Of a stretch of DNA of 50,486 nt, positions 872-29,002 are shown in pieces. The translations under genes were made by a program, and so were the position numbers. The stretch is taken from assembly GCF_006345805.1 (NCBI RefSeq), contig NW_021834273.1:1-50486 (forward strand), given 5' to 3'. Source of the DNA: Octopus sinensis. Its lineage: Eukaryota. The notes under the pieces are model-generated. The model searched no databases and was not told where the DNA came from. It saw only the letters and a list, made by a program, of their open reading frames with translations. How positions within the stretch are numbered: the stretch's first letter is position 1; every line of letters starts with the position of its first letter.

Positions 872-1028
872 CCACCGAACTGATGTTGTCGCCTTCTTAG
901 TCTCCAGTGGAGCAAATGTTAATAAGCATAACTCATGGGGCGACACACCTCTACATCTGGCTGTGGAGAAGAACTATGAAGATGTAGTCAAAGTCCTGTT
1001 AAATAGCAAAGAAAATAACAATTTACAG
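872..1028 (+). CDS. Exon A, ankyrin repeats ([17 protein letters not shown]...GDTPLHLAV...NNLQ)
   Basis: Acceptor cttcctttcag, donor CAG|gtcagc, GDTPLHLA motif. Confidence 0.9.
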
Positions 1029-4000
1029 GTCAGCGAATATATATATATATATGTGTCTGTGTGTATAATGATATGTATGTTGGTTTGTGTTATATGTATA
1101 TGAAACAGTTTATATTTATATTTTTTTAATTAAAAAATTTTCTTCAGCTCACACAGACCTGTACATATATACACAAATATACACACACATAAACGCATAT
1201 ATACACAAAAATGCATAAACAAATGATCAGTGAAGATATAAAACACGTATGTATATGTAGGTATTTATGTATATATGTATGTGCGAGAGTGTATATATAT
1301 ATATATATATATATTAAGGTATTAGAAAAATATGGACAAGAACGTATAAATCTTAGAAGACGACACAATAAACACGGACAGACATCGAAACCTCAGTTTC
1401 AGTCAAGAACCGGATATATATATATATATATATATATATGCATACACATATTGTGTGTGTATAGATACATTATAAATCTCATTTATTTTTCCCTCACCTT
1501 CATTCCACCTGTTTAAATTAATCTGATTCTGTTTTTCTGACATTTTTCCTTTTTTACCTTTTTCCCCCAATAAACACCATCTTTAATGTCTTTATTGTTT
1601 ATCTTTTTTAGGTTAATCTGCGAAATATTTTGGGTTGCATAGCTCTCCATGTTGCCTGTCTCTTTGGACACATAAAGGTTGTTGAACTTCTCCTGCAACA
1701 GAATGGCACGGATGTTAATGCTGTGCAGGAAGATGGTTGGACAGCTCTCCATGTTGCCTGTCACTTTGGACACAGAAAGGTTGTTGAACTTCTCCTGCAA
1801 CAGAATGGCATCGATGCCAATAAGGTGAACCTCAAGGGTGACACTCCTCTACATCAGGCAGTTCGAAAGTAAGTCCCCAATGGATTGGATTATCCAAATC
1901 TGTTTCTTTAATGTTTGTTTTCTTGTTTTGAGTCATTCATGTCATAATCCCACCATGGGTCGTCATGCTTCACCCCTCTCTCTCTCACACACTCTAATGA
2001 CACTGTAATCTAACTTCATTAATTAATCATCATAATTATTGTTGTTGTTGTTGTTACCTGACTGGATTCTTTACTTCATCTCATCCTTCGTTACCTCAAC
2101 GATACAGGTTCAAATCCTCTCCCTTCTTCCTTTCATTCCATGTACCCCCCCTTCTCTTGTAATTTTCCTCTTTCCTCTGGCCCTGGGCTAAATGCAGAAT
2201 CATCCCCTTACTTTGATCCGTTTGTGTTCCAAGTTCAACTCCTGGGGTCAAAATCTGTACCAGTAATATCTAGGGCTTCATTTAATAAATTGTCCTCCCT
2301 CTTTACTCCTGTTCTTGTGTCTGATTACTGTTGGAAAATATTCAGATAAAATTTATAAGTGTTGATATCTGGACGGTTTCCTAGTCTTCTGATTGTTTAC
2401 GGAATATGCGGTGTAATTTTTAATTATGTATCTTATGCAAATAACGTACATCTTCTTTACGCTGGTTATGGTAAATCTGTGTTTTGAGTTTATACCCTTC
2501 TTATAAATTTTATCTGAATATTTTCCAACCTTTGCCTTTTATTAACCCTTACGTCTTTCTACCCTTTTAGGCCCCTCTTTTTTGTATATTACGAGTTACC
2601 CTTCCAACCCTTTCGTTGTATTAACAATTAATATTATCTTAATTTTAATGATTCTTAATACTATTTTAGTTAACAGTATGTATGTGTATGTTGTTGGCAT
2701 CGTTTTTGTCTCAGGAGACAATGGAGTTGCGCATAAAATAGTCCAGTCCGGCTTTTACATTTCATGTCCTGATACATTTCCTGCTGTGGCTGTGTAGTCC
2801 TATCCTGGACAAACACTCCCTCTGGCAGGTACTGCAAATGTAGCGAAGACTGTTCCTGGCTGGTTGTAGTGTCATAGTTTCTTGTTGACTTCTTTTCTTG
2901 TCTTTCCATTTCTCCTCTCTCTCTCTGTCACTCCTTTGTATTCCCTCTTTTACGGTACGTCCCCAATCTCCACGGTTGCTGGCAATTGCTTCCCAACTGC
3001 TAATATTGATGTTGCAGGCCTTCATGTCCCTTTTGCAAACATCCTTGTAACGTAAGAACAGTCTACCCACAGACCTAGTACCCCTAGCAAGCTCTCCGTA
3101 GAGTATGTCCTTGGGGATTCTACCATCTTTCATACGGCTAACATGCCCAAGCCATCTCATACGTCTTTGTGTGAGGAGTGCAAACATGCTTGGTATTCCT
3201 GCTTGCTTGAGGACATCTTTGTTGAGGATATGATTCTGCCATTTGATGCGGAGGATTTTCCGGAGGTAGCGCAGGTGAAAGATGTTTAGGCGACGCTCTT
3301 GGCGTGTGTATAGCGTCCAAGTCTCACTTCCATACAGTAGAGTGCTAAGTACACATGCCTGGTAGATCTTCATTTTCGTGGTCTTAGTCAGCTTATTGTT
3401 GTCCCATGCCCGTTTGGAGAGTTGGGCCATCGCAGCAGCTGCCTTGCCAATGCGTATATTGAGCTCAACATCAAGGGATAGGTTGTAGGTGACGGTAGAG
3501 CCAAGATAGGTAAACTTCTCCACCTCCTGTAATCTGTGGTCTCCAATATGTATGTTTGGGATGTCCGATGTAGCCTGACCCATGATGTTGGCCTTCTTAA
3601 GTCTGATAGCTAAGCCAAAGTTGTTACATGCTTGCTCAAAACAGTTAATGAGCCTTTGGAGGGCTTCTTCTGTGTGTGATACCAGAGTGGCATCATCAGC
3701 AAATAGCATCTCCTTGATCAGGACGTTTCTGATTTTGGTCTTGGCACGCAGGCGCGAGAGATTGAACAGTTTCCCGTCACTTCTACTGTGCAGAAACACT
3801 CCATCATCTGATGTCTGAAAGGCATGTGAGAGCAAGAGCGAGAAGAAAATGCCAAATAATGTAGGAGTGAGGACACAACCTTGCTTTACCCTGCTTTTCA
3901 ATTGGAAGGTGGCTGATGTTGAACCATTGTGCTGTATGGTGCCTTGCATATCATCATGGAAAGACTTGATGATCCTCAGCAGCTTTGGTGGACATCCGAT

Positions 4001-4158
4001 TTTTTGGAGCAGGATGAAGAGGCCTTTTCTACTTACCAAGTCAAAGGCCTTTGTTAGATCAATGAAGGCCATATATAGTGGCATTTTCTGCTCTCTATGT
4101 GTATGTATATATATACATATATGTGTGCGTGGTTGTTTTCGGGTATATGTATTTGTTG

Positions 4159-4197
<39 letters not shown>

Positions 4198-4639: not shown

Positions 4640-4673
<34 letters not shown>

Positions 4674-5382: not shown

Positions 5383-5413
<31 letters not shown>

Positions 5414-5892
5414 GTGTGTGTGTGTATATATATATATTATATTAAATTAGAGACAAAACCACTATTAGGCAAATCTGATTTTTCCCTGTAAGTTTGGATT
5501 TATTCCCTAATATTTATTATATAAAGGGGTAAAGACCCCCTTCGGTCATGAATGACCATGGGATTGCACCTAGAAAGTTACCCTCCTAGACACAAGTCCG
5601 GGCAAGGTTGTTTATGGAAGACCAGCAGTCGCCCATGCATACCAGCCTCCCCTCTCCACGCCACCAGTGTTATCCAAGGGAAAGACAAAGGTCGATACAG
5701 CTTGGCACCAGTGACGTCGCAACTCATTTCTACAGCTGAGTGAACTGGAGCAACGTGAAATAAAGTGCCTTGCTCAAGAACACAACACGCAGCCCGGTCC
5801 GGGATTCGAGCTCACAACCTCACGATCGTAAGCTCGACGCTCTAACCACTGAGCCATGCGATGTATATGTATGTATATTATTATGTATATAC

Positions 5893-5948
<56 letters not shown>

Positions 5949-5954
5949 TATGTG

Positions 5955-5985
<31 letters not shown>

Positions 5986-6106
5986 GTATATATATATATA
6001 TATATTATGTATGTATGTGTATATATATATTATATATATATATATAGTATGTATGTGTATATATATATATATATATGTATGTATGTGTATATATATATTA
6101 TGTATG

Positions 6107-6139
<33 letters not shown>

Positions 6140-7207: not shown

Positions 7208-7833
7208 ATACATATATATATACACACACACATGTATAATATGTATATGTGTGTATGCAATTATTGATGTAATTAGGTTATAATGACTCAATTACATTTG
7301 TTTTAATTAATCTGATTATAATTATTTTTTTCCTTTCCTCTTTCTATAACTTTCAGGAGGCACTATGATGTGGTTGCTTCAATGCTGGTCCAGGTTAGTT
7401 AACAAATACATAATTATATCCTGTCTTTAATATTCGATATTAATATCATCAAAATACTGGTGGGTAGGTTTAATCAACTTCACTGCAGCAGCCTTTAAAC
7501 GGCAGGTCTTGGGTCTGTGAAGAATAATTATATTGGTGATAACAATGATGACAGTAGTAGTGGTGTTGACAGTCCAACTGACCACCACTGCTGACAGTAC
7601 TATCTTCAATGGTCAGACAAGACAAGGTCATTATGAATTCAACCCATATATATCAGATTATATATACTATCATCATCATCATCATCTTTTAATATCGCTC
7701 TGTCATGTTGTATGTGTGTGTGATATGTTATATATGTACATTGTTGGTGTCGGCATTTTATCTTGTGTCCAATAATTTATTTGGCTTCTTTTGGCTACTT
7801 TTTCCTCTCTGTACATATGTATAAATGTCTATG

Positions 7834-9915: not shown

Positions 9916-12900
9916 TTGCAGTGGCAATTTTGATTGTTATATGAATATGTGTGTGTATATATATATGTGCGTGTATATATATGTGTGTGTGTGTGCGTGT
10001 TACATCCATAACGTTAATATATTTATACATCTATATGTACAATGATGTAAGGATGTGGACACTAACCAACTCCCCCGTTTTATGGATCCCTTATTAACAT
10101 AGCAACATCAAAGGTTTACATTAAGTATATAATTCGTCTTTACTAGACTCGATCTGCTAATTATATTTTCACTCTTGTTCTAGTCCCCTAAAACATACTA
10201 TATAGTGAGGGTAAATGAAGATGAGGCTGAAACTATCTGTTTATGACATCTTAATAGATTTATCATGTCCCTAACAAATATCCATAGCGTGTTATAGAGG
10301 GACCTTACAGAAGGTTGACTACACTAACAAACATCAAATGTACATGATCAGGTTGATCAAGTACCCAGTAGAAGACAGCAATGACACATCCACCCTAATT
10401 TTCATGTACATTTTCAATTTCTATTTTTACTTCCACAAAGGATTCAGTGAAACTGGATATTGAGAACAATCGTAAAAGAACACCCTTACTGGAAGCCATG
10501 TATGCAGCCCACCTCGGAATAGTCCATAAACTTATTATACATGGTGCGAACATGAATGCCGTCGACAATGATGGCAATAATTGTTTGCACCTTTCCATAA
10601 TAAAGAAAGGGATGTTTCATTCTGAGGTGGAACGCATTTACATTTTAGATAAGGTAAGTTTTTAAAATTGTTTGTGAATGTGTGTGTGTGGTTGGTGTTG
10701 TTTTTATATATATATAATGTATTGAGTATTAAAGGAAGTAGTGAGTACTTAGTATGAAAGATTAAGAAAATGAGAGAGACTGAAACAACGTGTTAACGAT
10801 ACAAGATACTTTATTCGACTGCCGTTGTTGTACAAGTTAATTGTTTTGGCGGGAAACAAAGTGAAAGTCCTTTTATCAAGGGAGACAATGGGCGACGTTG
10901 ATTGTTCATGTTTGTTGTGATGATTATATAACATCTTCCTTTTTTTTTTTTTTTAAATTTTTTTTATATCATCTGTATCTACTGGGAATAATTATTCGTC
11001 GTCCACTTTTTGTGGTTTTATTATTTTGTAGTGTTGAATTCTGTAGTTGTGCTGTTTTTGTTTTTTCATGCGTGTTTGTTGACTTTGGAAATATATTTTC
11101 ATAATCTAATTCTTCTGTTATGCGAACGTGTTCGTTTGTTTTAAGAATATGTTGTCTATTTCGTTTGACTGTATTTCCTTCCTCTGTTATTACTAAGTAT
11201 GAACGAGGTTGCTCTAGTTTTTTAATTATTTTGCCCCTTCTAAACCAATTGTTGTTAAACTTAATTCTAACCGTGTCGTGTGGTATTAACTCTGGGAGTT
11301 CTGTTGTAATGTTTGATTTCTTCTTTTCGTGAGGCCTGATACCAATTTTGTCGTGTAATATGTTTGGGAGATTTGTTCGCAATGTTCTATTCATTATTTG
11401 ATTTGCAGGGGATGGTGCACCATTTTGTAATTTAGTCGTGCGTAATGCTAAGAGCGCTAACTGAGGTTCTTCGTCACTTTTGATTCTGAAATGAGTTCCG
11501 TATATAAACTGATGAAATTTCCTGCATGCGAAAACTATACTGAGAGCTTCGCTCTCTATCGGACAGTAGTTTTGTTCCGCTTGAGTTGTTGCACGAGATG
11601 CAAACGAAACAGGTAGCCATCTTTCGTTGTGTTTCTGCTCAAGTATCGCTCCGAGCCCATGCTTACTAGCATCTGTAGTTATTTTTATTGGTAGATCTGG
11701 ATCATAAAATTGTAGCACTGGTTTTCTGGTAATCATTTCTTTTATCTTTTTTATTGCTTCGATTTGTGGTTTGTCGAATGACCATAACGTGTCACTCTGT
11801 AGAAGCTGGCGCAATGGTGCTGTGACTTCGGAGTAATTAGATAAAAATTTACATAGGTAATTTGTCATACCTAGGAATCTTTGTAATTCTTTTTACTTGT
11901 TGGCAGTGGCATGTGAATGATTGCTTGTACCTTGGTTGGATCTTGTTTTATCCCTTCGCTGGTTAATATATGCCCAAGGTACTTGATTTGTGATTCATAG
12001 AAGATACACTTTGATTTATTTAACTTAATCCGTGCTTTCGGATTCGATCGAAAACTTGTTGTAGTCTATTTGTGTGTTCTTCTAAAGTGTTGGACCAGAT
12101 TATGATGTCATCCTGTGAATTTCTTGCTCCTTCTATGCCCTCTATTATTTTTGAAATTTCTTTTTGGAAAACTTCACTGGCGCTGTGAATTCCAAAGGGT
12201 AGTCGTGTGAAGCGATACCTTCCAAAAGGTGTGTTGAACGTTAAAAGATGGGAGCTTTCTTCGTCAACTGGAATTTGCCAGTATCCATTAGATGCATCGA
12301 GTTTTGAAAAATATTTAGGGTTATGCATTTGTGCAAAAATGTCCTCTGCTGTAGGGAGTTTGAAATGTTGCCTTTTTATGGCTTTGTTTAGATTCTTGGG
12401 GTCTAAACAGAGTCGGAGTTTTCCGTTGGCTTTTTCAACGATGACTAGGGAATTTACCCAGTCTGTAGGTTCACTAACAGGTTTTATGATATCTAATTCT
12501 GTCATTCTTTTTAATTCTTTGTTGAGTTTTTCTTTTATAGAAAAAGGAACCGATCTTGGTGGATGAATTACAGGAGTTATTTGTGGATCCACTGTGATAT
12601 GATGTGTTATTGACAAAGTGCCGATTTCTCCGAAACAGTCTTCATATTTTTCTATTATGTCGTTTGTGTTCGACGAATTTATTTTTGAAATTCTCTGAAT
12701 CAGGTTCAGATCTTTAGCTGTCTTTGCATCTATAACTGCGTGTGAGTTTGTTTTTGCAACAATGAATTTCATTTGTTTTGATACTTCTTTGTATTTAATG
12801 ACTGCTGTGCATTTTCCTAGCACTTTTATAGCTGTGTTATTATTGTAAGCTGATAATCGAGTTGAAGTTTTTTGCTGTTGTGGTTTTGGAATTATATTTC

Positions 12901-15068: not shown

Positions 15069-18000
15069 AAATGCATCAACATGTATCCATCGGGAGATCT
15101 GATGGTATATATTGTCTACTGTTTCAGAATTCAACCAACTCTTTGATTCCCGTATAAATAAAGGTCATTACTGATGTGTGACTCTATTTCAAACATTTGA
15201 TGATCATATGTAAATTGTAGTAATGTCTACTTTGGTGAGAAGAAGCCACTCTTGCAGTCAGCTACCCACCCAACTGGAATTGTCTAACAGTTTGAGCAGT
15301 TTATTAACTATAATGTGTTGGTGTGCTGCCTCAACTGTGACACTAATTCTTACTTCCTTTACTTCACCTTCATTATCCAAAGATGTTTCTTTATTAATTA
15401 TGGAAACGTTGTTATTTTTGGATATGTCTGTATGGTGTTGCTTTTGTTGTTGTGTCTGTTCTAAGTATTCTCAGTTCTCATGTAACTTGTTTGCTGTCAT
15501 GTTGTTGTGTTATATTTATATATACAATACTCCTCCATATTTCTTGTGTGATGGCCATTTATGGATTCACCAAGCTAGTTGAATAGGTTGTTGTTAGTTT
15601 GTTGTGTTCTAATATTTGTGATGTTTGTTCCATTATATTCCATATATTTGACTTGATGCTATGATTTGGTTTTAAATTGTTTTTTATTGAATATCTTGTG
15701 ATATTTGCAATTGGCAAATGATTATTTACGCATTAATTACCAATAAACTTGATGTTAATCAGTAATGTTTGTTCTGTTTAATATAATGACCATATATATA
15801 AAATATATAAAATATGTCATAATGTTGAGAATAGACTAAAAACAAATGAAAATGGGAAATGGATTCAATTAGAGATGATGTCGGAACTTAATATTGTGCA
15901 ATCAGTTTAAGCGCTGGAGATACAAACTATTTGTATACGTAGTTGAACTGTTGTGTAATTTGGGTATCTACGAAGTATATTTGTGAAATATTGTAATCAT
16001 CATTTTATACTTTGTCATTTGTAGTGCTGTGCTAAGCTTGGGTTGCCGATCAAAAAGAGGATCTCTGGTGTAGGAGTCGCCAGCTATCTAGCCCACCAGG
16101 GGGCCAACTTGTACAGGAAAAATAATAAGAATGTAGCTCCATTGGACCTCATTGGGGATGCAGATTTGAAAGAAAAATTTAAAGTATTATTCCCCCCACC
16201 ACAGTAAGTATTCATTGGCAGTGACAGTTTATTTTCTATTTTGTATATAATCATGTTTATGTTTGTTTAATTTTAATTCTACCAATACATTATACTGCCA
16301 TAGTGTCTTGATCAAAGGCCACACAACAATAGTATGAAGGACAATAAACAAAATGCAGTTGTTATGTGATCCAATGAAGAGCACTGTTTTGGTTGGTAGT
16401 TGTACCTCACTGTCTACCACCACCCATCTACCTTTCTTAGTTCCCTATTTTAAAGATTTGTGACCAATAAGAAAATGTAGAACTAAACAGTGAAGTGAAT
16501 GAACAGATTTTGAAGTTGTTACATAAAAACAAATGGAATTTATCTGTCTACCAACATGTTCTCTCTCTTCTCTGTTCCAATCAGTTCATTATTATGAAAG
16601 GTTTCGTAAGAAAATAAACTACACACCCAAACAGTGTGTGTATATATATCATCAACATCATTATCATCATTGCTTAACGTCCGTTTCCATCCTGGCATGA
16701 GTTGGATGGTTTGAAAGGGAGCCCGCCAGAAGTCTACACCAAACTTCTGTCTGTTTTGGCATGCCCAGCAGAGTGGACTGAGTAACACCAGCGCAGGCAA
16801 GGCCAGTTTTGGAATGGTTTTTACAGCTGGATGTCCTTCCAAATGCCAGCCATTTTACAGTGTGGACTGGATGCTTTTTATGTGGCCCCAGCACTGGCAG
16901 GGTCACCAAGTGTATATAGATATATAGATATATATACACACACACACACACATATTTCTGTTAATATTGCTAGAACACTGACACACATCTTCACAGAATA
17001 AAATTGCCAGGAAACATAAATCGTTCTGGTAACACCTATACCATTCTTAGTCTTTTAGGCTTCTTGGTCACATTAGACTCCTGTATTTCATAAGTTTTAG
17101 CTGTTACTTTGCCATATATTTGTTAGCTGCTGATGAACAAGACACATTATTCTCTGTGAGAATATGCATAACTTTCTTTGTCTGTTGAAATTCAGATATT
17201 GTCTTTAGATGTTGATTTCTGAACTGTATAAATATAGCTCTGTTTTATCCGATAGACAAGCATTGGTTGGACTTATTTATTAGCAAATAATCTTTTATGC
17301 AAATATTGTAATAACATAATGCATACAGAGCTGAGGTGTACTACAACTTACTGGGAAAGGGTAAAAGAGGGGATGGAAAGCAGTGCTTAGTCAAGTAAAG
17401 AAATACCGTTATGAAAGCTAGGAGTACATGCACGATACATAGAATAAAACACAAAAAACAGAAAGGCTAACAGTAAAAGAGGCATAAAAAGGTACATCAG
17501 GAGTGTAGTGGTCTATGTAGCTAAATAGTTGAATGATCTCCCTTGCAAGAAAGCATATAGAGTAACCTCCCTTTACAAAGTTTCTAGCAGCATCTGTGTC
17601 ATCAGATGTGATTCTTAATTATTCAAGTATCTTAGCATTTCTCTTGGTAGTTTCTAGAATATCTAGCATTCCATTCATAAAAACAGCTTGCTAACCCTGC
17701 TCTTTGCTTCTTAGTCGATTAGACTTAGAGCCATTCACGTCATTGCTATGTCCGTCTGTTTCTCTACGCCACATGGCTGAAAACCACCACTTGGCTATTA
17801 TTTCTATATTTCCTATCTCTGAACTTTCTTGTATAGATTATTTCATTCAACTAGATGCTACATATTAATTCTGTGTATCGTCATCGACCAGTAAATAAAA
17901 TATATTTTTCCGTAGTAAATATATAGGTCTTGAATTTATTCTTCATCTCTTTATGAACTCTTGTAAATAACATACACGCAGCCACATCAACACCTTGTAC

Positions 18001-21000
18001 TGGCTATATATCCTCGGTAAGAAAAGAATATTTTGAAGGATGCCGTATCCTGACAGCTAACAGCTGACTCAGGTGGTTTGTTGTGTGTTTAAATAATTCT
18101 GAGTGAGATAAAGTATTTCACACTGTTTTTTATTTTAATTTTATAAGAATGTCTGCTGCTGGCTGAGATTTTGAATTCAAAAATGTTGCCAAAGTTGTTG
18201 TTGGCAAGATTATGTATAAACCTAAGGGATTATACCAGATTAGCTGCTAGACTTCAAAACTTTAGTGTGCTAATACCCAGAGAAACAATACATTCAGTAT
18301 ATGGTGACTAACAGAGAGTATTTGCCTGGTTTGGAGATCAGATTGAAGCAAAGGTATATAGCATCTAATAAGATGTCAATACCCAGAGAAGCAATATATT
18401 CAAGATATGGTAACTAAGAGAGAGCATTTGCCTTGTTGTTCTTCTCTGAATAGATATTCTGGACAGGATGGGGATTCCAGATTGGAAATGTAAACTGTAA
18501 GTGTAGACGTATGATAGCCAGGCATAATTTTAAACTGATAACTTGACAAATTGACGGGCAGAGGTTTTACTGAGCAATACTTTGATATTTCTGATGATTT
18601 TTAGAAATGTGGTTCATGCATTACACATCATTGTTGACATTAATGTCACGGTCAAGTTCACCTGCAGACTTTTGAAGTTTGCTGTTCTGGAGAGAGTTGG
18701 TAAATTTTGGAATTTTCATTCCAAAGTGTATAGTGGTGCACCATTCTATGGCCAGCTTGAGTTTGCAATCAGCAGTGCATTGCTGCATTGTATCCAGGTC
18801 AGATTGAAGAAAGGATCTATAGCAGATAGTTGGCATGTATTTAGCTGATACATAGAAGGAGCAAGAGAAAACCAAGAGTAGTTCCTTGTAGGTCTTCTGT
18901 GTTGGGTGCAGAATGTTAGCTTAGTGTTGTGACTCTGTCTTTTCAACTGAGAATGTAAGTATTTTAAGCAGTTATATAATTTAGTCCTCGCACCCATTCC
19001 AGACAGTTGTGCCGTAATTGATCACTGTGGCATGGAATTAAAGACTTTGGTGAAGTTGATAGAGATAATATCCACCCATGAACCACCATCTGTGAAGAAA
19101 TTCAATGCAGCAACAGTTAGGGATAAATCGAAATGGTTGGAGTTTGAATAAGCTTATGAGGGTTCCAGATGTTCCAAAATGTCTTCCTGTAGATCCATTA
19201 ATTCTGTGAGACTGACTGGATGGTAATCAACAGGGGATGTCTGGTCACTCCCTTTTTGAACGGGGGAGAATACTGGCAACTTTCCATTAAACTGGGCTAA
19301 GTGTGAATTAGAAGAGGACAAAAAGCTGGTGCAGTAGAAAAAGGGTGCACCCTTTGAGAAGCAGATGAATAACACCACCAAGACAAGAGGAAGCATAATT
19401 GCACATATGCTTCAATTAGCATTGCGATATTGCAGAATTCAACAGGTTTTATGGAATTTGATCTCAGTAGCAGTGAAAACGGTACATTTGTCACTCCTTT
19501 AATATGGCAGGGTACCATGTTGCACCTTCTTCTTTTATCCCCTGTTCTTTTATCACGTCCAGCATCTCATCGATATTTCCTGGCAGTCTCTCACATATTC
19601 AGGCTTCTAAAACGTTTGTATGGCACCGACACTTATTCATGAATTAAGGATGGATGTGCTGAAGGTTAGTCTTGACATCTCCAGAATTGTAAAGTCGAAG
19701 CCAGTCAGGGAACTATACCTCAGTACAGTCGGAGTTCCAGGAAAACAAAGCAGTTTGGAAGTTATGGTGGCTTTTCTTTCTATCCATTAGAAATATTTTT
19801 GCAAGATTGGTGTATGATCAGAGTCACCTAAGGGTTCATCACTATTGAGGCTGATAATTTCAGGAGCAGTGGTAAATAGCAGATCGAAAGTGTTGTTAAC
19901 TCTTATGGGAGAGAGACTGCTTGGGATTAGTTTGAATCTAACATTAAATGAAGGAAATCTGTTGTGGCCAGTGGAAGATTTCCTAATCAATATTGGGTAA
20001 TTGAAATCACAAGTATGAGAACATAGGTAACCATTTTCATAGATGCAGCTCCAAAATTGTTTTGAGGATGGTAAATGTTGATGTGCTTTTATGTCGCAGA
20101 AAAATTCCTCTTGTGACTGGTTTAAATCTTCACAAGCAATTTCTGAAAAGCTTGAGCAAGCATAGACCATCGCACCACCTCCAAGGTAATGAAAGAGGTC
20201 TTTGTGAAAGAAAATGTAGCCAGCCATGCTAAAAACACCATTGCACAGTAAAGAATGTGTCCAGGTTTAACAAATGAGATTGGAATCAGTACTTTTAACT
20301 TAGGAATCAAAAATAGTGAACTTTATTGCATAAACTGTGGGTATTTTTAAACAATAATTTGTATCTCGATTTAAATCTGTCATGGTTCATGGAAGAGGAT
20401 ATCCTCAGACCAGTTTGCATCCCTTTTTCATCTGGTATTGAGTCATGATTTAAGGGACCTACAATATGTAACTTCAGGTGTGTATCAGGTGGTGAATGAC
20501 GAAGAGCTCAATTTATCACACCTGTCCTTATAAGAAGCTAAACAGTATGCACATAGCTCAGTAGAAGGTGAATCTAACTCGTTTGGGTTTTGATCCAATC
20601 AACTGAGGCAAATAAAATTGTTTTGGAGGAACACATCTGAAGTTGATAAGATGTAGATCAATGAACATGGACTCACCTATAACAAGGGGCAGGTTTGTAT
20701 GCAGGGCAAACCTAGACTGAAGTGTTTTGCTAAAGAACTTTACACATCGCCTTGTCCAGGAATTGAAGCCGCAATTTTACTGTGTGAGTCCAAAAGCCTA
20801 ACAACTTAGCCATGCACCTCACTCTGGTCAGTCTGGTGTTTCATAATATTCTGTACTGTAAACATAAAACAAACATGTAATATTTGTTAGAAATGAATGT
20901 TATAGGTGGGATGTGTTTTATGTTTTTTCCACAGATGTATGCTTTGTGAAGTGAATGAAGCCAGCATGGAGTTACAACCCTGTGCACATACTGTTTTATG

Positions 21001-23635
21001 TGAAGATTGTAGCAAAATTCAACTTAAAACATGTATAGAAAGCAAAAGGAGAGTTGGTAAGAATATGATTTGATGATCTGTCTGTTTGTCACATGACATT
21101 ATGGAATGGAATAATGTTGTATCGACCCAGATCTGTCATAATCTGACAGACGTATGATAAAAGATGTCCCAGGTGTCTTTTCTCTTTGATAGTATATCCA
21201 TGACTACACCCACTGAATATTGTCTTTATCCAAGTAGGAAACCTGTCCCACATCAAAAGAGTACTGTCTGCAACATAAGACTAATACGTTTTACTGAAAT
21301 ATAAATGAAATATCAATAAATCTCCAAGGTCCCATCAGTAAACATCAACTTTTTATATTCAGTTGTCAGCTTTTATATGAGGTTAATGATTTATAAGTAT
21401 CTTGGGAAACTGATAATTAAGGACAACAGTACTTCCTACAACATCACAGTCAGCTTTGTAATGTAAGAATTTCAATGACAAAATCTCAACTGAGAGTTTA
21501 AGGATCTGACTCTTAGCGAGTCTTATATATTCTTGAGAATGAATTCTAGTGTCCCATTTCAGATATAACTCCTTTGCAATAATGTGTAGATAAACAGTTT
21601 TAAGTTAAGGAGGTTTTATACAAATGTAATGTTTCAGGATACCTGTTATCACTTTCTGCTCCACCTGTGTAGAACTAATCATTGCTCACCTGGAAAAAGA
21701 AAAAGCTGCTTATTAAGGAGGATGAATGACATTGAAATATCTTCAGATCTTTCCTGAATCAGGTGGTATTCTGGTGAAGTGTGATGTGGGCAGTTAAAAT
21801 TAAAGATTACCAACAGTAACATATAAAAATGAGGGCTGGGGTATGTTTATCCTTCCTGAAGCAATGTGTCATGCCTTTGTGGCCAGATCTTTGAAGACCA
21901 GATTGGTTGACACTGGAATTTAGCAGAAGATGAGAAGAATATTGGTTAGTGAAGGTTCGAGATGAGAGGACAATGGCATGTCATATGACCAGCACAGACA
22001 TAACAAAGGAAAGACAAAACTAAGAGAAAAAGAGTGTTATGAAGTGATAACTAAGTGAGAGAATTTCAGAATTGTTAGATTAGTATATAGGATGTCTTAA
22101 TAGAAAGATGAGATTTAGAAAGGTTTGCCTATTTTGTTGTGGTTCTAAATATTGAACTATTATATAGTAACAGCTTAGAAAGTGTTGACCGAAAGCATAG
22201 TGGTCACCAATTGACTATTGATGATATGAATGCCTTACAAAAATGGAATATAGATTATTAAAAGAGACAAAGAAATTTTACTATGAAGTATAAAACTTTG
22301 AAATGCTTATTTCAGTGTGTCCAAAGTGTAAAGAAAAAGCAGTCAAGACGGTTGTAGAATCTGTTGGTGAGTATAAAATATCTGTAATTGATTTCTATAA
22401 ATTTTACCTTCACCTGAGATATATTATTTGTGTGAATGACTGAGAACAGGTTCCATTCTTAATTTCCAATTCTTATTTCAGAATGTCCAAAGTGTAAAGA
22501 AAAAGTAGAATCTTTTGGTGAGTATAAAATAACTGTAATTGATTTCTATAAATTTTACCTTCACCTGAAATATATTATTTGTGTGAATGTCTGAGTACAG
22601 GTTCCATTCTTAATTTCCAATTCTTATTTCAGTGTGTCCAAAGTCTGAAGAAAAAGGAGTCCAGACGGTTGCAGAATCTGTTGGTGAGTATAGAATAACT
22701 GTAATTGATTTCTATAAATTTTACCTTCACCTGAGATATATTATTTGTGTGAATGACTGAGAACATGTTCCATTCTTAATTTCCAATTCTTATTTCAGTG
22801 TGTCCAAAGTCTGAAGAAAAAGCAGTCAAGACGGTTGCAGAATCTGTTGGTGAGTATAAAATAACTGTAATTGATTTCTATAAATTTTACCTTCACCTGA
22901 GATATATTATTTGTGTGAATGACTGAGAACAGGTTCCATTGTTACATTTCTTTCGAATGGTTAGCGATAAAAGTAATTCTATTCGTTACCTACAAATGCA
23001 AGAATATCCAATAAAGGGGTTTTATAGAAATATGGAAACATGAGACACAGGAAAAATGTCTTTCACGATGAGGCCAAAATACAAAAGATAAAATATAACC
23101 CTGAAGCTGTTCTCTCCCCATAATGAGATACATTCACTTTTCTTTCATCTCATTGTTGTCTCTCTCTCCTTCCCTGTTTCTTCCTTCATCTCTCTCTCTC
23201 TCTCTCTATGCATCTACATGTAGCAGCCTCTGTACTTTCCAGTCGTGTAACAACATGAATTGTATTTAAAATATTGATATTACAGAAATTTAATAAAATG
23301 TCCAGCAGTGTTGGCAAGTATCCTCTGTTGCTAAAATGGTTAAATTAGAAAAAAAAAAACAATAGAGTTAATATTGTCTTTTGAATGAAGGAAGAAAAAC
23401 ATTTTGTTGTTTAATGGTAAACAGGTGAGTTAATGACAGTGTTTGTTTGTTGTACATTTTCAATAAGTTTACTGATTATTGTTGTTGATGTTCTTGTTGA
23501 ACAAGATGGTTAAGTTGAAAGCTTACAAGTGTGATCACCCTGTCTTTTTTTTCACTGTTAGTAAATCTATCATTACATCCATTAAACGATGTCTTTGTCC
23601 AAGTAAGAAGCTTTGGTCTGCTGCTGAGACAATTG

Positions 23636-23684: not shown

Positions 23685-26600
23685 TAAGATGGACACTGGT
23701 TGCAAGATACAATACAATCGATGTTATTGTCCTCATCATTTACAGTCTGCTCTCCTTGCTTCCATGTAATGGATGGGTGATCACTGTCCAAGTCAGTTCT
23801 TATTCAGAGTTACTGTCCCCCTTGACTGCTTGAGAAACACATCTCCCTTAAACATTCCACCTTTTCTATGGTGGGATGCCCTCCCCAACACCAACCACTT
23901 CATAAAGAGTCCTGAGTACATTTTAATGTGGCACAAGCACTAGAAAGATTTTCATGTGTCCAACATTGAAACTGGAATAGCTGTAGGTTGCACACTATCA
24001 GTCACTTGGTTTGTGCTTGTTATGGGGATCGGCAGATTTATGAGAAGAAATTACTCAGGCGAAATCATCTAAGAAAACATTCATGGATGACATAAAAATG
24101 CTAACAAGAGATCCAAAGTATATGCAATCAGTCCAAGATAGATTGGATGGACTAATTAATTGCTCAAGAATGCTGTTTGAAACAAATAATGAATGCATTC
24201 TGACATTTGTGAAAGGTCAACAGAAGCAAGTGAAGTTCAAAATAGCAGGAGAAATGATGCGAAAGGTTAAAGAGTAACTTGTAAAACGTTTTGGACTGTG
24301 GTAGATGATCTCATTGTCCGATAAGAGTAGAGGCATTGATGTCATTGCAGAAACCGAGGATGGGCAATAAGCATTTGCCAAGTCAAAACTTCTGGGCAAA
24401 AACAAGATTTGGTGCTTGAAGTTTGATCTATATCACCATCTTGATAATATATTCTTAAATATCACTTCTTTTGTACCATTTCAGATATTTTTCCTTTGCG
24501 ATAATCTGTGTATGAACATTTGCATGTTGTTAAAGATGTTTTGTGCAAGTATACAGTGTTTTAGGATACTTGCTATCACTTTCTGTTTCACCTGTGTAGA
24601 ACTAATCATTGCTCATCAGGAAAGAAAAGCATTTCATTAAGGAGTCCTTAAATATTTCCTGAATCAGATGAAATTCTGGTGAACTGTGAGTTGCATTGTT
24701 TAAAATTAAAGATTAAAAGCAGCAACGTTTGACAAAGATAACAGGTGTGACATGAGTTTGTGTCAAGGTCATTGATGACCAGCTTGGTTGACATCAGAAT
24801 TAAGCAAAAGAAGAGGGGAATGTTGATTAGTGAAGTCCAGTGGTGAGGGGACAATGCCATGTCATAGGTTTAGAATGGATACAAGAGATACATGTGATCA
24901 TTAAATAAGATGATTGCAACGTTGTTAGATTAAGTAGGATGTCTTAATAGAAAAAGGAGGCTTAGGAAGGTCAGTCTATTTTATTATGGGCCTAAATATT
25001 GAGCCATTATATAGGACCACGGTAGAAAGTATAAAACTATCAACCAAACCTATAGTGGTCAGCAGTTGTCCATTGATGATAGGAATGTCTTACAATAATA
25101 AAATATAAACCATTAACAGAGATCAGGAAATTGTGCTATGAAGTGTAAAATTTGGAAATATTTATTTCAGATTCTGTAACGGTAGAGGAGATTCATCTTC
25201 ATAGGGTGTCCCAAAAGTTGGCAGGTAAATGGATGGAACTTGGTGAGTATAAAACACCGAATTTCTATAAATTTTGCTTTCAGCTAAACTTTTGTTTGTT
25301 TGAATGACTGAGAACCGATTCCATTCCTAATTTCCAATTGAAAGTTTAGCTATAAAGTAAAGCTATCACTGAAATTTCATAAAATATCTATGGACGTCAG
25401 CACGGTTGTAAAATGTATAAATTAGAAGGTCCAGTAGAGTTAATATTATCGTTTGTAAAAGGGGACTCAAAAATATTGTTGTTTAAGAGTAAACAGGTGA
25501 ATTAATGACAATGTTTTTGCTTGTTTACACTTTTAGTAAGTTTACTAGTAGAGTGTTGTTGTTGATGTTTATTTTGGCAGATATCTGCCTTAATCTGGCA
25601 GAATTAAGGGGAAAGGGTTCCAGATGTGCCATCGCTCTTTCTCTTGGGTGAAGAGGACCACATTATCAAATGTAACCTTTTTAAAATGAGAGTGTGCATT
25701 GTGTGGGACATGTTGTCATCTCTCCCCTGGCCAGTCTGTTTTTCTATATTTATTGTAATTCTTTAGTCCCAGGTCAACATATATTTCCTGTCTCTATAGA
25801 AGACAGGCCCCATTGTTGATTGTGTTCATGGCTGGATTGAACTCAGCATTGTAAGTTAATGAAACACTCATTTATATTAGAAAAAAAAGAATCTCAACAG
25901 AAAATTCAAACTCAACTTGATCTTGTTTCTCAATTGAAATCATTTCACTCTCCTTTACATTACAAATGTCACGTGGAAAGGCATGAACATCACAATATCC
26001 CATTTCCCCTTCTCCGACAGTTTAACACAACATAAAATATCATTTATACAATGCTCCTATTATTTACAGCAATGTCTTCTACCTCCCTATGGTACCTATA
26101 TACATCTAGATAGAATGAAGCATAGAGAAATGTCTTTACCAGGTACATTGAGCGGTGCTGGGGATTAGATTTGAACCTTTGATCCCTGACTCAAGGGATC
26201 ATGACAATATCCCCTGAGTCAGCTGATAGAAACCATCATCTTCATCATCATTTGACGTCTGTTTTCCATGCTGGCATGGGTTGGACTGTTTGACTGAGGT
26301 CTGGAGAGCCAGTGGCTGCACCAGGCTCCAATCTGATCTGGCAGAGTTTCTACAGCTGGATGCCCTTCCTAATGCCAGCCACTCCGAGAGTGTAGTGGCT
26401 GCTTTTTATGTGTCACCAGTACAGGAGCCAGTCAGGTGGACCTAGCATCAGTCATGTTCGGATGGCCTTTTTACGTGCCACCAACACAAGGAGTCAGTCA
26501 GATGACACTGGCATCGACTACATTTGGATGATGCCTTTTATGTGCCACCAGAACGGGGGCTAGTCATGGGGCACTGGCCACAGCTGCAATTTTGGTTTTA

Positions 26601-29002
26601 CTTGACTCAACAGGTCTTCTCAAGCATATCATGTCACCCGATGCATTAAGGATACTCTTAAATGGGCCGGACATGCAACACTGGCATCGGCCATGGCTGC
26701 GATCTCACTTTAGTTGCTGGGTCTTCTCAATCACAGCATATTTCCAAAGGTCTCGGTCTCCTGCCATTGCCTCTGTGAGGCCCAATGTTCAAAGGCCATG
26801 CTTCACCATCTCATTCCATGTCTTCCTGGGTCTACCTCTTCCACAGCTTCGTTCTACAGTTAGGGAGTGGCACTTCCTCACACAGTTGTCCTCATCCATA
26901 CGTAACACGTGACCATACCAGCATAGTCGTCTCTCTTGCACACCACATTTGATGCTTCTCATGTCCAACTTTCCTCTCAGGGTGTTTACACTGTGTCGTG
27001 TATGCACACAGACATTCCACATCCAGCGGATCATACTACCTTCATTTCTGTCAAGCCTACGCATGTCCTCAGCAGTCATGGCCCATGTTTCACTGCCATG
27101 TAGCATGGCAGTTCACACTCAGAAATGATTTATCTAATTTAAGAAAGGACATCATCTACAACATTGCCAGCTTGCTATACCTCTGGGTGTCATACAAAAT
27201 ATACCAGTCATATACTGGGATAAAATGAATCCACTAACACCAGGTCCATTATCATCATCACCTTACATCCATTTTTCTAAGTTTGTAATGGTCAGACGAC
27301 TTCTCCCAGAGTTGTTGTGGTCCTTTGTCCAGTTTGATCGCTTGTTTCTTTCCACTTGAATTCCAGGCACTTCTTTACCCAGATTTCATCTGCCATGTCC
27401 CTTCTATATCTATACCATTAACTTTTTTCTTGTACACTATCACAGATTCTTCTGAGATCCAGTTATTTGGCTCCAAGATTTCAACACATTAACATTACAC
27501 TTCTAGAGATGTCTGCTCACCTCATTCCTGGCAGTTTCCATTGTATCTTTCACATTCTATGTAACATTGCATGAGGTGTATTTGTAAAGTGCAATCTCTC
27601 CCTCATATGGAGACAGAATCCCTTAGTTGCCAGTAGACATAACAACTCCCTGTACATTTTTCATCTCATTTTCCTTCTAACTACTGTGCTTTCAGAATAG
27701 TTTCCTCTACTTCTAATTCTGTCCTTTAGGTAACAGAAACTATCAACTATGTCTTTCATACTTGTTCCTATGAACTATTCCTGTACACATACAAAGTCCT
27801 TCCTCAGCCCTAACCTTAACCTGCCTCCTTGTAAACTTGCTTGTTTGTGAATGCAGTGATTCTATCAGGACCCAAGTGTTGTAGGTGTATGGTGTAGATG
27901 TTGGTAAAACTCTTCTCATTGCTTTATTTACTCTAGGGCCTCTCCTGTATTAGATTCTTTGAAATTGTGGCCTTGATCCAGTGAAAGAAGTTCTTGTTAT
28001 AAGTCATGAATCCAAAAACCTTAAGCCAGCGCCCTCTATAATATGTGATATTTACCTAACAGTATTATATTTTTACTTTGGGGTGGTTGAAATCATTCAG
28101 GTACACAATACCCACTTTTGAGATATTTCTGAATGTTGATAATTTTTAAATATTTATTAATCATAGGTGGAAAGACATCGCAAATGACTATTTCAGGCAT
28201 TGATCACAGGACGTTATCAAACGACTGAGATTGTATTCCTCCAAAGAGTCTCTGGAGTAACGTTACTCAACAAGGTGTGCAGGCTGGAGATTTGGGGCCT
28301 CTCCAGGTCAAGTGACTGCTTCTCTGCATTGAGAATTCACAGCTCCAGTACTCCTGGCATGTGATTAAAATGTCACAGGAAAGAACCACAAGAGGGATGA
28401 AGGAGGTGCCTGAAGACTCTTCCCCTACAACTCTCCTATGAATAGAGGGCAGAGAAAATGGACGGATGGATGAAATTATCTGTTGGTGGTCTTTGTTAAT
28501 TCTTTAGGCTCTCATACACTGCTACCCACACAAACACTTCTCCTGCCAGTTGTTCACCAGACATTTTCTCATGTGTAATTTTCAATTCTTTAAAATATTA
28601 TTCTCCTTCTCCAGCCTTTATTTCAACTTGTTTGATATTTTTGTCAACATCTTTAGAAATAGATGACAATGTCTTCTAATTTCCCTGTTTCTTAAGTATT
28701 TCTCATTCTTCTATTCACATAATTTCTTTGTCCTAATTAATACAGGTTTTATATTATCGTTAATGTTGTTGCAATTATTTCTTATTTCTTTTGCAGGAAG
28801 GGAATTAGGAATTCGACAAAATGACCTGGAAATCATCAGGCATGACTATCCTCAAAGCGTTAGGGAACAAGGCTTCCAGATGCTGTTCAAATGGCATCAA
28901 AGTACTGATCCAGAGAAACGTACACCTCGAATATTAAAAGCAGCTCTTAAGGAAACTGAATGTTATGATGCACTCAAATGTTTATCATCAGAATTCAATT
29001 GA
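872..29002 (+). CDS. Spliced gene, 5'-partial: ankyrin repeat + RING-like + CxxC micro-exons + death domain protein (Mind bomb-like ANK-RING module). join(872..1028,1612..1868,7357..7393,10441..10653,16025..16203,20935..21056,22316..22366,22482..22517,22633..22683,22799..22849,25171..25242,28797..29002)
   Basis: All introns are GT-AG and phases chain 2-0-2-0-0-2-1-1-1-1-1-1. 1431 nt after the first base read without a stop to TGA at 29000-29002. Ankyrin repeats are rejoined correctly across the junctions. Confidence 0.85.
1612..1868 (+). CDS. Exon B, ankyrin repeats ([16 protein letters not shown]...[11 protein letters not shown])
   Basis: Acceptor tttttag, donor AA|gtaagt, phase 0 continues exon A. 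Confidence 0.92.
2690..4092 (-). mobile_element. 5'-truncated RTE-clade LINE; uninterrupted 440-aa RT C-terminal ORF 2762..4084
   Basis: [34 protein letters not shown]-terminal C2H2-like motif, and a gatgccaacaaca-type 3' end. Confidence 0.92.
4325..5340 (+). repeat. ~1-kb AT-rich non-coding dispersed repeat, copy 1 (Penelope pLTR- or retrozyme-like), containing a hammerhead motif
   Basis: Aligns by eye to the reverse complement of ~35130-36130. Boundaries are approximate. Confidence 0.6.
5005..5131 (+). ncRNA. Minimal type-I hammerhead ribozyme motif, copy 1 (intact core)
   Basis: ATCT-CTGAAGA-AGCC-[92 nt hairpin]-GGCT-GAAAC-AGCT-GTA-AGAT; stems I, II and III can all form. Confidence 0.7.
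5531..5860 (-). mobile_element. tRNA-derived SINE, young copy
   Basis: Minus strand has A box TGGCTCAGTGG, B box GCTCGAATCC and a CORE-like gtgttcttgagcaaggcacttta segment. Near-identical to 49931-50254. Confidence 0.9.
5861..7260. repeat. Compound (TA)n/(TATG)n microsatellite with an embedded ~40-nt RTE 3' tail (7075-7112)
   Basis: Direct inspection. Confidence 0.95.
7357..7393 (+). CDS. Exon C, 37-nt micro-exon ((K)[12 protein letters not shown])
   Basis: Acceptor tttctataactttcag, donor CAG|gttagt. It supplies the missing second helix of the [11 protein letters not shown] repeat and converts phase 2 to phase 0, as required. Confidence 0.85.
8211..8341. mobile_element. 131-bp MITE, Tc1/mariner-type
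   Basis: Perfect 19-bp TIR CCTCAAGGACATGTATTAC / GTAATACATGTCCTTGAGG, flanked by TA on both sides. Confidence 0.8.
8690..9740 (+). mobile_element. Decayed RTE LINE fragment (AP endonuclease and linker)
   Basis: YFYDTLL...[14 protein letters not shown]...GFG remnants with stops and frameshifts. Confidence 0.75.
10441..10653 (+). CDS. Exon D, ankyrin repeats ([19 protein letters not shown]...NNCLHLS...ILDK)
   Basis: Acceptor ttccacaaag, donor AAG|gtaagt, TPL and GANMN motifs. Confidence 0.9.
10934..10954 (-). promoter_or_regulatory. Polypurine tract of the LTR element
   Basis: Minus-strand A-run + GGAAGA abutting the 3' LTR. Confidence 0.85.
10969..11868 (-). pseudogene. Gypsy RT connection/RNase H fused in frame to the integrase C-terminal tail
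   Basis: [10 protein letters not shown]...YCPIESEAL...FRIKSD joined directly to [13 protein letters not shown]...[13 protein letters not shown]. Confidence 0.85.
12020..13162 (-). pseudogene. Gypsy aspartic protease + reverse transcriptase (frameshifted at both ends)
   Basis: [49 protein letters not shown]. Confidence 0.92.
13102..13935 (-). CDS. Gypsy Gag with C-terminal zinc knuckles
   Basis: CHYCGYNH...CPA...[14 protein letters not shown]; begins 79 nt after the 5' LTR. Confidence 0.9.
   Translation of the reverse strand: MENLPHPKDLDFNQENLAAAWKKWKKEFNLFLIATESDMKPDKVKTSMFLTCIGSKGRDIHSTLDFDSPDEEMNLQTVIEKFDAYCEPRKNITFLRHKFFTCGQAEHQKFDEYELCQKAQQCEFGNLTDSLTKDILICGIRDMRLRERLLREPNLDLQKTIQAGQSAEQTRLQSRMLNATSETRDNEISRVYSQHDRKGAKTQITCHMQSRHQNEQGGSDRKPAKFQAPSQHYVTNCHYCGYNHKRNKCPAFHKTCEKCKKQGHYAKMCKSRKLYIK
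14004..14014 (-). promoter_or_regulatory. Primer binding site, TGGTGTCAGAA (tRNA-Leu type)
   Basis: Immediately inside the 5' LTR; complementary to the ...TTCTGACACCA 3' end that I recall for tRNA-Leu(CAA). Confidence 0.8.
14253..14400 (+). mobile_element. RTE-family 3' tail; the Gypsy element inserted at its 5' edge
   Basis: gttggcattagaaagggcatcc...catggaaaatggacattaaatgatgatg, shared with other copies in the window. Confidence 0.8.
16025..16203 (+). CDS. Exon E, last ankyrin repeats (CCAKLG...[22 protein letters not shown]...FPPP)
   Basis: Acceptor gtcatttgtag, donor CA|gtaagt. Not in the ORF track. Phase 0 to 2 bridges exons D and F exactly. Confidence 0.88.
16655..16905 (-). mobile_element. 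RTE-family 3' tail
   Basis: catcatt...aacgtccgtttccat...ctggatgtccttcc, reverse complement of the shared tail. Confidence 0.75.
18540..20250 (-). mobile_element. Old decayed CR1/L2-type LINE fragment
   Basis: NNTFDLLFT...LGDSDH (APE end), PVQKG...[13 protein letters not shown]...IHFG remnants. Confidence 0.75.
20680..20820 (-). mobile_element. Decayed tRNA-derived SINE head
   Basis: Minus strand gcatggctaagttgttagg...ttcaattcctgg resembles the 5531 family. Confidence 0.55.
20935..21056 (+). CDS. Exon F, RING-HC-like finger (CMLC...PCAH...CEDC...CIES)
   Basis: Acceptor ttttttccacag, donor G|gtaaga, C3HC4 spacing with the final ligand as Ser. Confidence 0.88.
22316..22366 (+). CDS. Micro-exon G1, 51 nt ([17 protein letters not shown])
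   Basis: ttatttcag|...G|gtgagt, phase 1-1, open frame. Confidence 0.75.
22482..22517 (+). CDS. Micro-exon G2, 36 nt ([12 protein letters not shown])
   Basis: Same splice sites as G1, with an in-frame 15-nt deletion. Confidence 0.7.
22633..22683 (+). CDS. Micro-exon G3, 51 nt ([17 protein letters not shown])
   Basis: Same splice sites, phase 1-1, open frame. Confidence 0.7.
22799..22849 (+). CDS. Micro-exon G4, 51 nt ([17 protein letters not shown])
   Basis: Same splice sites, phase 1-1, open frame. Confidence 0.7.
24020..24420 (+). mobile_element. Decayed non-LTR RT fragment
   Basis: MDDIKML...CILTFVKG resembles RT motifs; the clade is uncertain. Confidence 0.45.
25171..25242 (+). CDS. 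Exon H, death domain N-terminal part ([24 protein letters not shown])
   Basis: tttatttcag|...G|gtgagt. It joins exon I to give the death-domain hallmark L.gkW.eLGReLG. Confidence 0.85.
26238..27118 (-). mobile_element. RTE LINE 3' fragment (RT end + 3' UTR)
   Basis: [11 protein letters not shown]...RLCWYGHV...GRPRKTW plus the shared (GAT)n tail. Confidence 0.9.
28797..29002 (+). CDS. Exon I, terminal coding exon, death domain ([14 protein letters not shown]...QMLFKW...[10 protein letters not shown])
   Basis: Long pyrimidine tract + gcag acceptor, death-domain pattern, TGA stop. Confidence 0.88.

Follow-up and report, generated by a model that had tools for sequence, protein, structure and literature searches.

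A Mind bomb-type ankyrin-RING part joined to a death domain in a gene family found in Octopus, with a truncated RING in one Octopus sinensis copy

Introduction

The E3 ubiquitin ligases MIB1 and MIB2 (Mind bomb) contain MIB/HERC2-ZZ-MIB/HERC2 and REP (SH3_15) domains and two or three RINGs, together with an ankyrin block in which an insert splits the last repeat; this repeat ends in a PLDL motif, after which come a short helix and a RING of the zf-C3HC4_3 type. The subject of this report is a gene on the unplaced Octopus sinensis scaffold NW_021834273.1, the whole of which (50,486 bp) was analyzed and is called the window below. This gene resembles MIB1 and MIB2 in the interrupted ankyrin block, the PLDL motif, the short helix and the zf-C3HC4_3 RING, and differs from them in having neither the MIB/HERC2-ZZ-MIB/HERC2 nor the REP domains, only a single RING, a death domain (DD) at the C terminus and many paralogues.

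Among the inhibitor of apoptosis proteins (IAPs), cIAP1 and cIAP2 (BIRC2/3) pair a death-fold CARD with the same type of RING. Both they and the oyster BIR-DD-RING IAPs resemble the octopus gene in that a single polypeptide contains a RING of the IAP type as well as a death-fold domain; oyster IAPs that combine a death domain with a RING have been described (PMC8917759). In the octopus gene, however, a true death domain follows the RING, whereas the CARD or death domain of the IAPs precedes it, and the target-binding part consists of ankyrin repeats. No BIR domain was found in Pfam scans of the octopus proteins, which places them outside the IAP family.

Ankyrin repeats upstream of a C-terminal death domain are a feature shared with ANKDD1A/B, ankyrin-1/2/3, DAPK1 and NF-kB p100/p105. 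To our knowledge, none of these proteins has a RING between the ankyrin repeats and the death domain, and, unlike the ankyrins, DAPK1 and NF-kB, the octopus gene has no ZU5-UPA, kinase or Rel domain by Pfam. Death domains mediate homotypic oligomerization, their shuffling is widespread in invertebrates, and all the domains considered here are common. Full-text searches of the literature gave no description of an ankyrin-RING-death-domain family in octopus, cephalopod or mollusc, and the combination of a MIB-type ankyrin-RING part with a death domain appears to be undescribed, although every single domain is well known.

Results

Exon structure of the gene

The window contains a real 12-exon gene in which a MIB-type ankyrin-RING part is joined to a death domain, confirming what a preliminary description, made from the sequence and a list of open reading frames (ORFs), had observed. 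The exons (Table 1) were defined by reading splice sites directly and by mapping RefSeq isoform X1 back to the + strand with tblastn. An AG acceptor was present at 12 of 12 exons and a GT donor at every internal exon, phases were consistent throughout, and the exons joined into one 476-codon frame extending from 872, the first acceptor of the model, to 29002, the end of the stop codon (29000–29002). From HRTDVV to the stop, the joined frame is identical residue for residue to XP_036355683.1 (isoform X1, "E3 ubiquitin-protein ligase MIB2-like"). RefSeq has a single gene here with isoforms X1–X22 (XP_036355683-703 and XP_029656757.2; 421–484 residues), named "E3 ubiquitin-protein ligase MIB2-like", "MIB1-like" or "ankyrin-3-like" depending on the isoform. 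The exon structure itself is not new, the gene models having been made automatically and being already in RefSeq.

Splice sites, phases and the identity with RefSeq bear out the parts and coordinates that had been proposed, except that exon b2 was unmentioned, CxxC motifs are present in only two of the four micro-exons, and the 5′ end is cut. Exon b2, which is needed to hold the frame between exons B and C, was overlooked; at 37 nt it was too short for the ORF list. The draft joined protein, lacking b2 and three micro-exons, was 88–95% identical over its full length to two O. sinensis RefSeq clusters. An ORF of 77 residues (24044–24274), located in the intron that separates the micro-exons from DD exon 1, was considered as a further exon and rejected; its boundaries are in phase 0-0, its acceptor is poor, it matches no Pfam family and it is in no RefSeq isoform.

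The scaffold begins inside the gene, which is cut at its 5′ end. Because the acceptor of exon A is in phase 2, a further exon must lie upstream, off the scaffold; the ATG at 849 that RefSeq takes as the start codon falls in intron sequence upstream of this acceptor. No upstream ankyrin exon was found in 1–871 by tblastn and three-frame reading. The Octopus vulgaris orthologue CAI9743652 (556 residues; P0123) has 80 extra N-terminal residues, which form further ankyrin repeats. This orthologue has the same structure, all four micro-exons, the same deletion in the RING (see below) and no stops. The proteins encoded by exons A, B and b2 are identical in the two species, and the 11 residue differences all lie in the C-terminal two thirds.

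Ankyrin block and junction with the RING

The joined protein has about eight ankyrin repeats, including the interrupted last one, as had been described. Pfam Ank matches ranged from 6.8e-40 to 1.3e-50 and fell in 4–6 separate stretches plus the interrupted repeat, corresponding to tandem repeats of 33–34 residues. The interrupted repeat reaches the PLDL motif at the end of exon D, and is followed by the short helix and then the RING. That this junction is of the MIB type, also part of the preliminary description, is upheld by alignments that run unbroken through it and across the insert: to the solved MIB1 ankyrin domain 8v0e (query 3–119, chain 249–377, E 8e-12); to the full MIB protein P0272, which has MIB_HERC2, ZZ, SH3_15 and three RINGs (E 1e-12); and to the O. 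bimaculoides MIB2-type protein P0274, which has REP domains (32% identity over 215 residues, E 1e-30).

The remaining MIB domains were not found. MIB_HERC2 (PF06701) and ZZ (PF00569), both present in P0272, were absent by Pfam from X1 and from P0123, the O. vulgaris orthologue in full length. REP (Mind bomb SH3 repeat, PF18346; SH3_15) was absent from P0123 and P0001, whereas it occurs in P0217 and P0274, both MIB-type proteins of Octopus. There is no second or third RING in the gene, the one RING exon being followed by the linker and death-domain exons. These comparisons indicate that the ankyrin-RING part descends from a MIB-type module and that the gene is a derivative, not a Mind bomb orthologue.

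C-terminal death domain

The C terminus both scores and, by prediction, folds as a death domain, in agreement with its initial assignment. Pfam Death was matched with an E value of 4.9e-12, at 46.2 bits for the domain alone and 41.9–42.2 bits within isoforms (cut-off 22.6). When PDB was searched by sequence, the RIPK1 death domain came first (E 2.3e-6), followed by ankyrin-3, PIDD, Fas, CRADD and TNFR1. The C-terminal 221 residues were modeled with AlphaFold2 using a 12-sequence alignment, and the death-domain part was predicted as six helices with a predicted local distance difference test (pLDDT) score of ~90. With this predicted fold as the query, the top Foldseek matches in PDB were RIPK1 (TM 0.78, root-mean-square deviation 1.9 Å), ankyrin-G, TNFR1, RAIDD and FADD; ranks 1–44 were all death domains, and CARDs appeared from rank 45 on. 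Ankyrin-G is thus among the best matches by both sequence and fold. RIPK1 is the best match by both; the octopus gene differs from it in having no kinase or RHIM, and the identity of only ~29% reflects family resemblance, not orthology.

RING and its lesion

By sequence, the best PDB matches of the RING were cIAP1/2. Against a Pfam cut-off of 27 bits for zf-C3HC4_3 (PF13920), the RING scored 23.6 bits in the joined protein and 27.1 and 28.0 bits in isoforms of the window, compared with 26.3 bits for the O. vulgaris orthologue and 39.8 bits for the intact paralogue P0007. Across the aligned family, zinc ligands C1–C6 do not vary, but the window sequence lacks the CPxC pair; exon E holds ligands C1–C6 only, two short of the eight-ligand C3HC4 cross-brace.

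Paralogous DNA was compared using L001, a 97% identical segmental copy on chromosome CM016885.1 that lacks exons b2, C and D. Alignment of the window to L001 revealed an 18-nt in-frame deletion between 21029 and 21030 that took out RCPKCK, and with it RING ligands C7 and C8. A short repeat, TAAAA, flanks the deletion, which is not found in intact paralogues or in L001. Since both ligands are lost, ubiquitin-ligase activity of the window copy is doubtful, and the ligase role that had been proposed for this gene is weakened for the copy in the window.

The RING exon of L001 (~26735–26760) has retained the 18 nt, but an insertion of 1 nt shifts its frame and leads to a stop, so that the two copies carry independent lesions in the same exon. 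RING integrity also varies elsewhere in the family: other members have truncated RINGs, and in a subgroup of paralogues (for example P0032, P0163, P0313 and P0025) Asp replaces the RING histidine, giving PCGD for PCxH. A donor inside the RING exon (ACAT/GTATAG, the slash marking the splice point), through which ...KIQLKT would be joined to the CPKC of micro-exon m1 with canonical spacing and a score of 37.2 bits, was considered and rejected as a weak site unused by the isoform sequences read.

Linker micro-exons

All four micro-exons between the RING and the death domain are phase 1-1 cassettes, and the RING exon ends in phase 1. CxxC micro-exons, as reported at first, do exist, since m1 and m2 read CPKC; m3 and m4, however, read CPKS, and the comparisons that follow indicate that none of the four is a zinc module by origin. 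The non-coding flanks of the micro-exon array (21525–22315 and 22907–23428) are 74–88% identical to the flanks of DD exon 1 (24447–25170 and 25292–25500). Across the family, the micro-exon peptides of 17 residues can be aligned in register to residues 1–17 of the DD exon 1 peptides (ETPKLEEKCLQDVAKLL... type), with 8 of 17 residues shared in the best pair. The mean BLOSUM62 score was +8.3 at offset 0 versus −6 to −26 at other offsets (z 4.4), and 2 of 100,000 column permutations reached this score. Some paralogues retain a full-length degenerate copy of DD exon 1. The intron identity and the in-register peptides together indicate that the linker micro-exons are tandemly duplicated, shortened copies of death-domain exon 1.

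The lengths of the isoforms and the ten isoform sequences read fit combinatorial inclusion of the micro-exons together with a 15-nt alternative acceptor in DD exon 1. This acceptor lies 15 nt inside the exon (25171–25185, ...GGTAG/AGGAG) and explains the isoforms without DSVTV. The linker was predicted by AlphaFold2 to be disordered (pLDDT <35).

Family and distribution

A profile of the module consisting of the junction ankyrin repeats, RING, linker and death domain was compared with 1.84 billion representative proteins, giving 47 matches below 1e-30. According to local module models, ~20 representatives had all three modules. Twenty representatives were looked up; 19 of the 20 had family-type scores, and 19 of these 19 were from O. 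sinensis, O. vulgaris or O. bimaculoides. Matches from outside Octopus that were looked up were ordinary MIB-like proteins (beetle, bryozoan) or proteins with multiple death domains (starfish). With the same profile, in a word-indexed search of 5.8 billion proteins, 95 clusters were significant and 95 of 95 were from Octopus, from the same three species and from many chromosomes and scaffolds. No family-type match came from bivalves or gastropods, whose well-annotated genomes were assumed to be in the searched libraries. By these searches, the family has multiplied into dozens of genes in Octopus and was found only in that genus. The suggestions that the gene belongs to a paralogue family and is lineage specific rather than a widespread conserved orthologue both held in these searches, and the family proved to be large.

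Exon shuffling had been proposed as the origin of the gene and is plausible, given that phase 1 is used at the end of the RING exon, that DD exon 1 is phase 1-1 like all of the cassette exons, and that the same type of death domain is found on another architecture. The C-terminal 90 residues of an O. bimaculoides adhesion G protein-coupled receptor (GPCR) with LRR, GPS and 7tm_2 domains (P0195, XP_052821851) are a family-type death domain, which scores 102 bits to the family death-domain model and sits after a tail of QSTSQ repeats. A death domain in one such receptor has been mentioned in passing (PMC6408891). The presence of a family-type death domain on this receptor suggests that the death-domain cassette moved between genes.

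Divergence of exon B from the chromosomal copy

Exon B (1612–1868) differs from its counterpart in L001 (22287–22543) at 48 of 257 positions (18.7%), compared with 26 of 1006 positions (2.6%) in flanking non-coding sequence (Fisher p 7.6e-18), so that the exon differs seven times more than the introns that flank it. The corresponding values were 8.9% versus 3.8% for exon A (Fisher p 0.048) and 4.1% versus 1.6% for the RING exon E (Fisher p 0.06). In exon B, the amino acid is changed in 28 of 85 codons, silent changes are found in 4 of the 57 unchanged codons, and framework runs of 41–51 nt are identical to L001. When the changes were mapped by hand onto the consensus ankyrin repeat, most of them fell at beta-turn and first-helix positions, the usual ankyrin binding surface.

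The exon B protein is 100% identical to that of the O. vulgaris orthologue, and the L001 version is 81% identical to other paralogues versus 67% to the window. Nei-Gojobori estimates were ~0.22 for dN and ~0.21 for dS, a ratio of ~1. Positive selection on point mutations alone is not supported, given this ratio and the resemblance of the L001 version to other paralogues; gene conversion or selection against homogenization accounts for the data better. The pattern suggests either exon-confined gene conversion among paralogues or homogenization of introns with selection keeping the ankyrin exons distinct, and it fits selection that keeps paralogue-specific binding surfaces. Either process would imply that the ankyrin surfaces matter, and the pattern thereby lends indirect support to a functional and diversified family. 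The situation is analogous to that of red/green opsin-type duplicates, in which introns are homogenized and key exons kept distinct, with divergence here of 18.7% versus 2.6%.

Surroundings of the gene

The introns and the downstream sequence contain retroelements (Table 1). A similar ORF is present in three copies, at 26789–27106 (−), 32623–33027 (+) and 43916–44356 (−); it has no match in Pfam and probably represents the C-terminal region of a repeated retroelement. The ORFs at 5552–5743 and 49951–50142 have identical 63-residue translations, although they are 44 kb apart; each lies beside long TA-rich microsatellites, and the pair probably belongs to a dispersed repeat. Homologues of the gene matched nothing past 29002 in the window by tblastn, and Rfam and tRNA scans of the window found nothing.

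Table 1. Positions of exons, repeats and retroelements in the window (LINE, long interspersed nuclear element; LTR, long terminal repeat; RT, reverse transcriptase)
Feature	Positions	Strand	Description
Exon A	872–1028	+	End of one ankyrin repeat and one full repeat; phase-2 acceptor; from splice sites and tblastn of X1
Exon B	1612–1868	+	About 2.5 ankyrin repeats; segment most diverged from chromosomal copy L001
LINE reverse-transcriptase fragment	2762–4084	−	Intron B/b2
Exon b2	7357–7393	+	37 nt; second helix of an ankyrin repeat
Exon C	10441–10653	+	One ankyrin repeat and first half of the interrupted last repeat; from MIB alignments
LTR-retrotransposon gag-protease-RT-RNase H	10969–13935	−	Intron C/D
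Exon D	16025–16203	+	Insert and second half of the interrupted repeat, then short helix; from MIB alignments
Exon E (RING)	20935–21056	+	zf-C3HC4_3 type; zinc ligands C1–C6
Segment holding the micro-exon array	21525–23428	+	Non-coding parts are a diverged duplicate (74–88% identity) of the DD1 segment 24447–25500
Micro-exon m1	22316–22366	+	51 nt; phase 1-1; CPKC; included or skipped among RefSeq isoforms
Tandem array carrying the micro-exons	22356–22950	+	166-bp unit, 3.7 copies, 88% matches; Tandem Repeats Finder; repeat family D1
Micro-exon m2	22482–22517	+	36 nt; phase 1-1; CPKC
Micro-exon m3	22633–22683	+	51 nt; phase 1-1; CPKS, without CxxC
Micro-exon m4	22799–22849	+	51 nt; phase 1-1; CPKS, without CxxC
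DD exon 1 (DD1)	25171–25242	+	72 nt; phase 1-1; death domain helix 1
DD exon 2 (DD2)	28797–29002	+	Death domain helices 2–6 and stop codon; from Pfam, AlphaFold2 and Foldseek
LINE endonuclease and reverse transcriptase	39109–42126	+	Downstream of the gene

Discussion

We consider it likely that the locus is one copy of an Octopus family of probably cytosolic ankyrin-RING-linker-death-domain proteins, and that the window copy is an adaptor or regulator that is weak or dead as a ligase. Judged from its RING sequence, the window copy itself is most likely such a ligase-weak or ligase-dead adaptor or regulator, not an active E3. For the family, we infer an adaptor, cell-death or immune function. 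The gene had also been put forward as a possible receptor, of which there is no sign: in the full-length orthologue, Pfam gave only ankyrin, RING and death domains and no secretion or membrane domain, and no signal-peptide or transmembrane predictor was run.

The family probably arose from a MIB-type E3 ancestor through loss of the additional RINGs and of the domains that bind substrate (MIB/HERC2-ZZ and REP), and through gain of the death domain as a two-exon, phase-1 cassette. The linker micro-exons were probably formed by tandem duplication and shortening of DD exon 1. In the proposed mechanism, the ankyrin surface would bind a partner or target, and the death domain would assemble an oligomeric signaling complex with other death-domain proteins, as happens in pathways of cell death and innate immunity. 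Where a paralogue has an intact RING, that RING would ubiquitinate components of this complex, and alternative inclusion of micro-exons would alter the length of the disordered spacer between the RING and the death domain.

Several observations weigh against placing the locus in such a family as a working adaptor or regulator. The RING of the window is at or below the Pfam cut-off, and the frameshift of L001 in the same exon means that part of the subgroup may be decaying. The isoforms X1–X22 are known here as RefSeq models. The restriction to Octopus could instead be one to octopods or coleoids, the coverage of other cephalopods in the libraries being uncertain.

One alternative is that the gene is a decaying duplicate becoming a pseudogene, in other words a recent segmental copy in a birth-and-death family whose frame is open by chance and whose isoforms are merely computational. 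The 18-nt deletion cost two zinc ligands of the RING; L001, the sister copy, is frameshifted in that exon and is missing b2, C and D; the introns are full of retroelements; the scaffold is short and unplaced, with the 5′ exon absent; and all 11 differences from the O. vulgaris orthologue lie in the C-terminal two thirds. Decay nevertheless seems unlikely. Canonical splice sites are kept at 12 of 12 exons in one open 476-codon frame, the death domain has a good score and a confidently predicted fold, and the O. vulgaris orthologue shares the structure, the four micro-exons and the RING deletion and has no stops, with exons A, B and b2 identical in protein between the species. Alternatively, the RING could be completed by splicing, in that the CPKC of m1 or m2, ~10 residues past the truncated RING, might supply C7 and C8 and make an active E3 whose activity depends on cassette inclusion. 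Long loops between C6 and C7 are tolerated by RING domains, the m1 CPKC is aligned by Pfam to the end of the RING model in X1 (model 4–45, 27.1 bits), and m1 and m2 read CPKC where most micro-exons of the family read CPKS. Such a repair by splicing is improbable, however, since CPKC and CPRC micro-exons are also present in paralogues with a complete RING and so are no specific repair, the region is left disordered by AlphaFold2 (pLDDT <35), and there is no gain in Pfam score (27.1 bits with m1 versus 28.0 bits without).

Two further alternatives concern the identity of the gene. The ankyrin-RING and death-domain exons could belong to two neighboring genes joined by the prediction software, as the model was seen here as a prediction only, not from transcripts, and as the annotation of the O. 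vulgaris locus merges tandem paralogues into one gene of 116 kb, which shows that models in the cluster can fuse. We regard such a chimera as very improbable: phase 1 fits across the RING, micro-exon and death-domain exons, DD exon 1 begins at an acceptor and shows no context for a start codon, and the same order is found in dozens of paralogues in three species, including O. bimaculoides A0A0L8GZF6 (P0149), whose annotation is possibly separate, its source being unchecked. The RefSeq name and the MIB-like ankyrin-RING junction would be expected of an octopus MIB1 or MIB2 orthologue acting in Notch-ligand endocytosis. This identity is refuted by the domain content, in which MIB_HERC2, ZZ and SH3_15 are absent, the RING is single and a death domain is present; separate Octopus MIB-type proteins with REP exist (P0217 and P0274), and the gene has dozens of paralogues. 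The automatic RefSeq names obscure the nature of the gene, and "MIB2-like" labels in cephalopod genomes should not be taken to mark Notch-pathway Mind bomb genes.

Returning to the preferred reading, in which the locus is one member of an Octopus family of adaptors or regulators, a wider proposal can be made, although tentatively and as a possibility that we hold to be less likely than its opposite. The family may be a diversified intracellular ankyrin-RING-death-domain repertoire of the octopus's own, serving as innate-immune or cell-death sensors or adaptors, with surfaces kept distinct by selection or exon-confined conversion and with spliced linkers. Cephalopods, unlike sessile marine invertebrates, have few or no TRADD-N adaptors, according to a study that describes lineage-specific expansions (PMC8195603), and the expansion of a death-domain family in octopus is therefore noteworthy. 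If the proposal is true, it would represent a large expansion of death-domain adaptors in a lineage reported to be without such expansions of the related TRADD-N adaptors. If members of the family act in death-domain signaling, they would extend the toolkit of cell death and innate immunity in a way specific to octopuses. The family would then also provide a clear example of domain gain by phase-matched exons, of new linker exons made from duplicated domain exons and of distinct binding-surface exons amid nearly identical introns.

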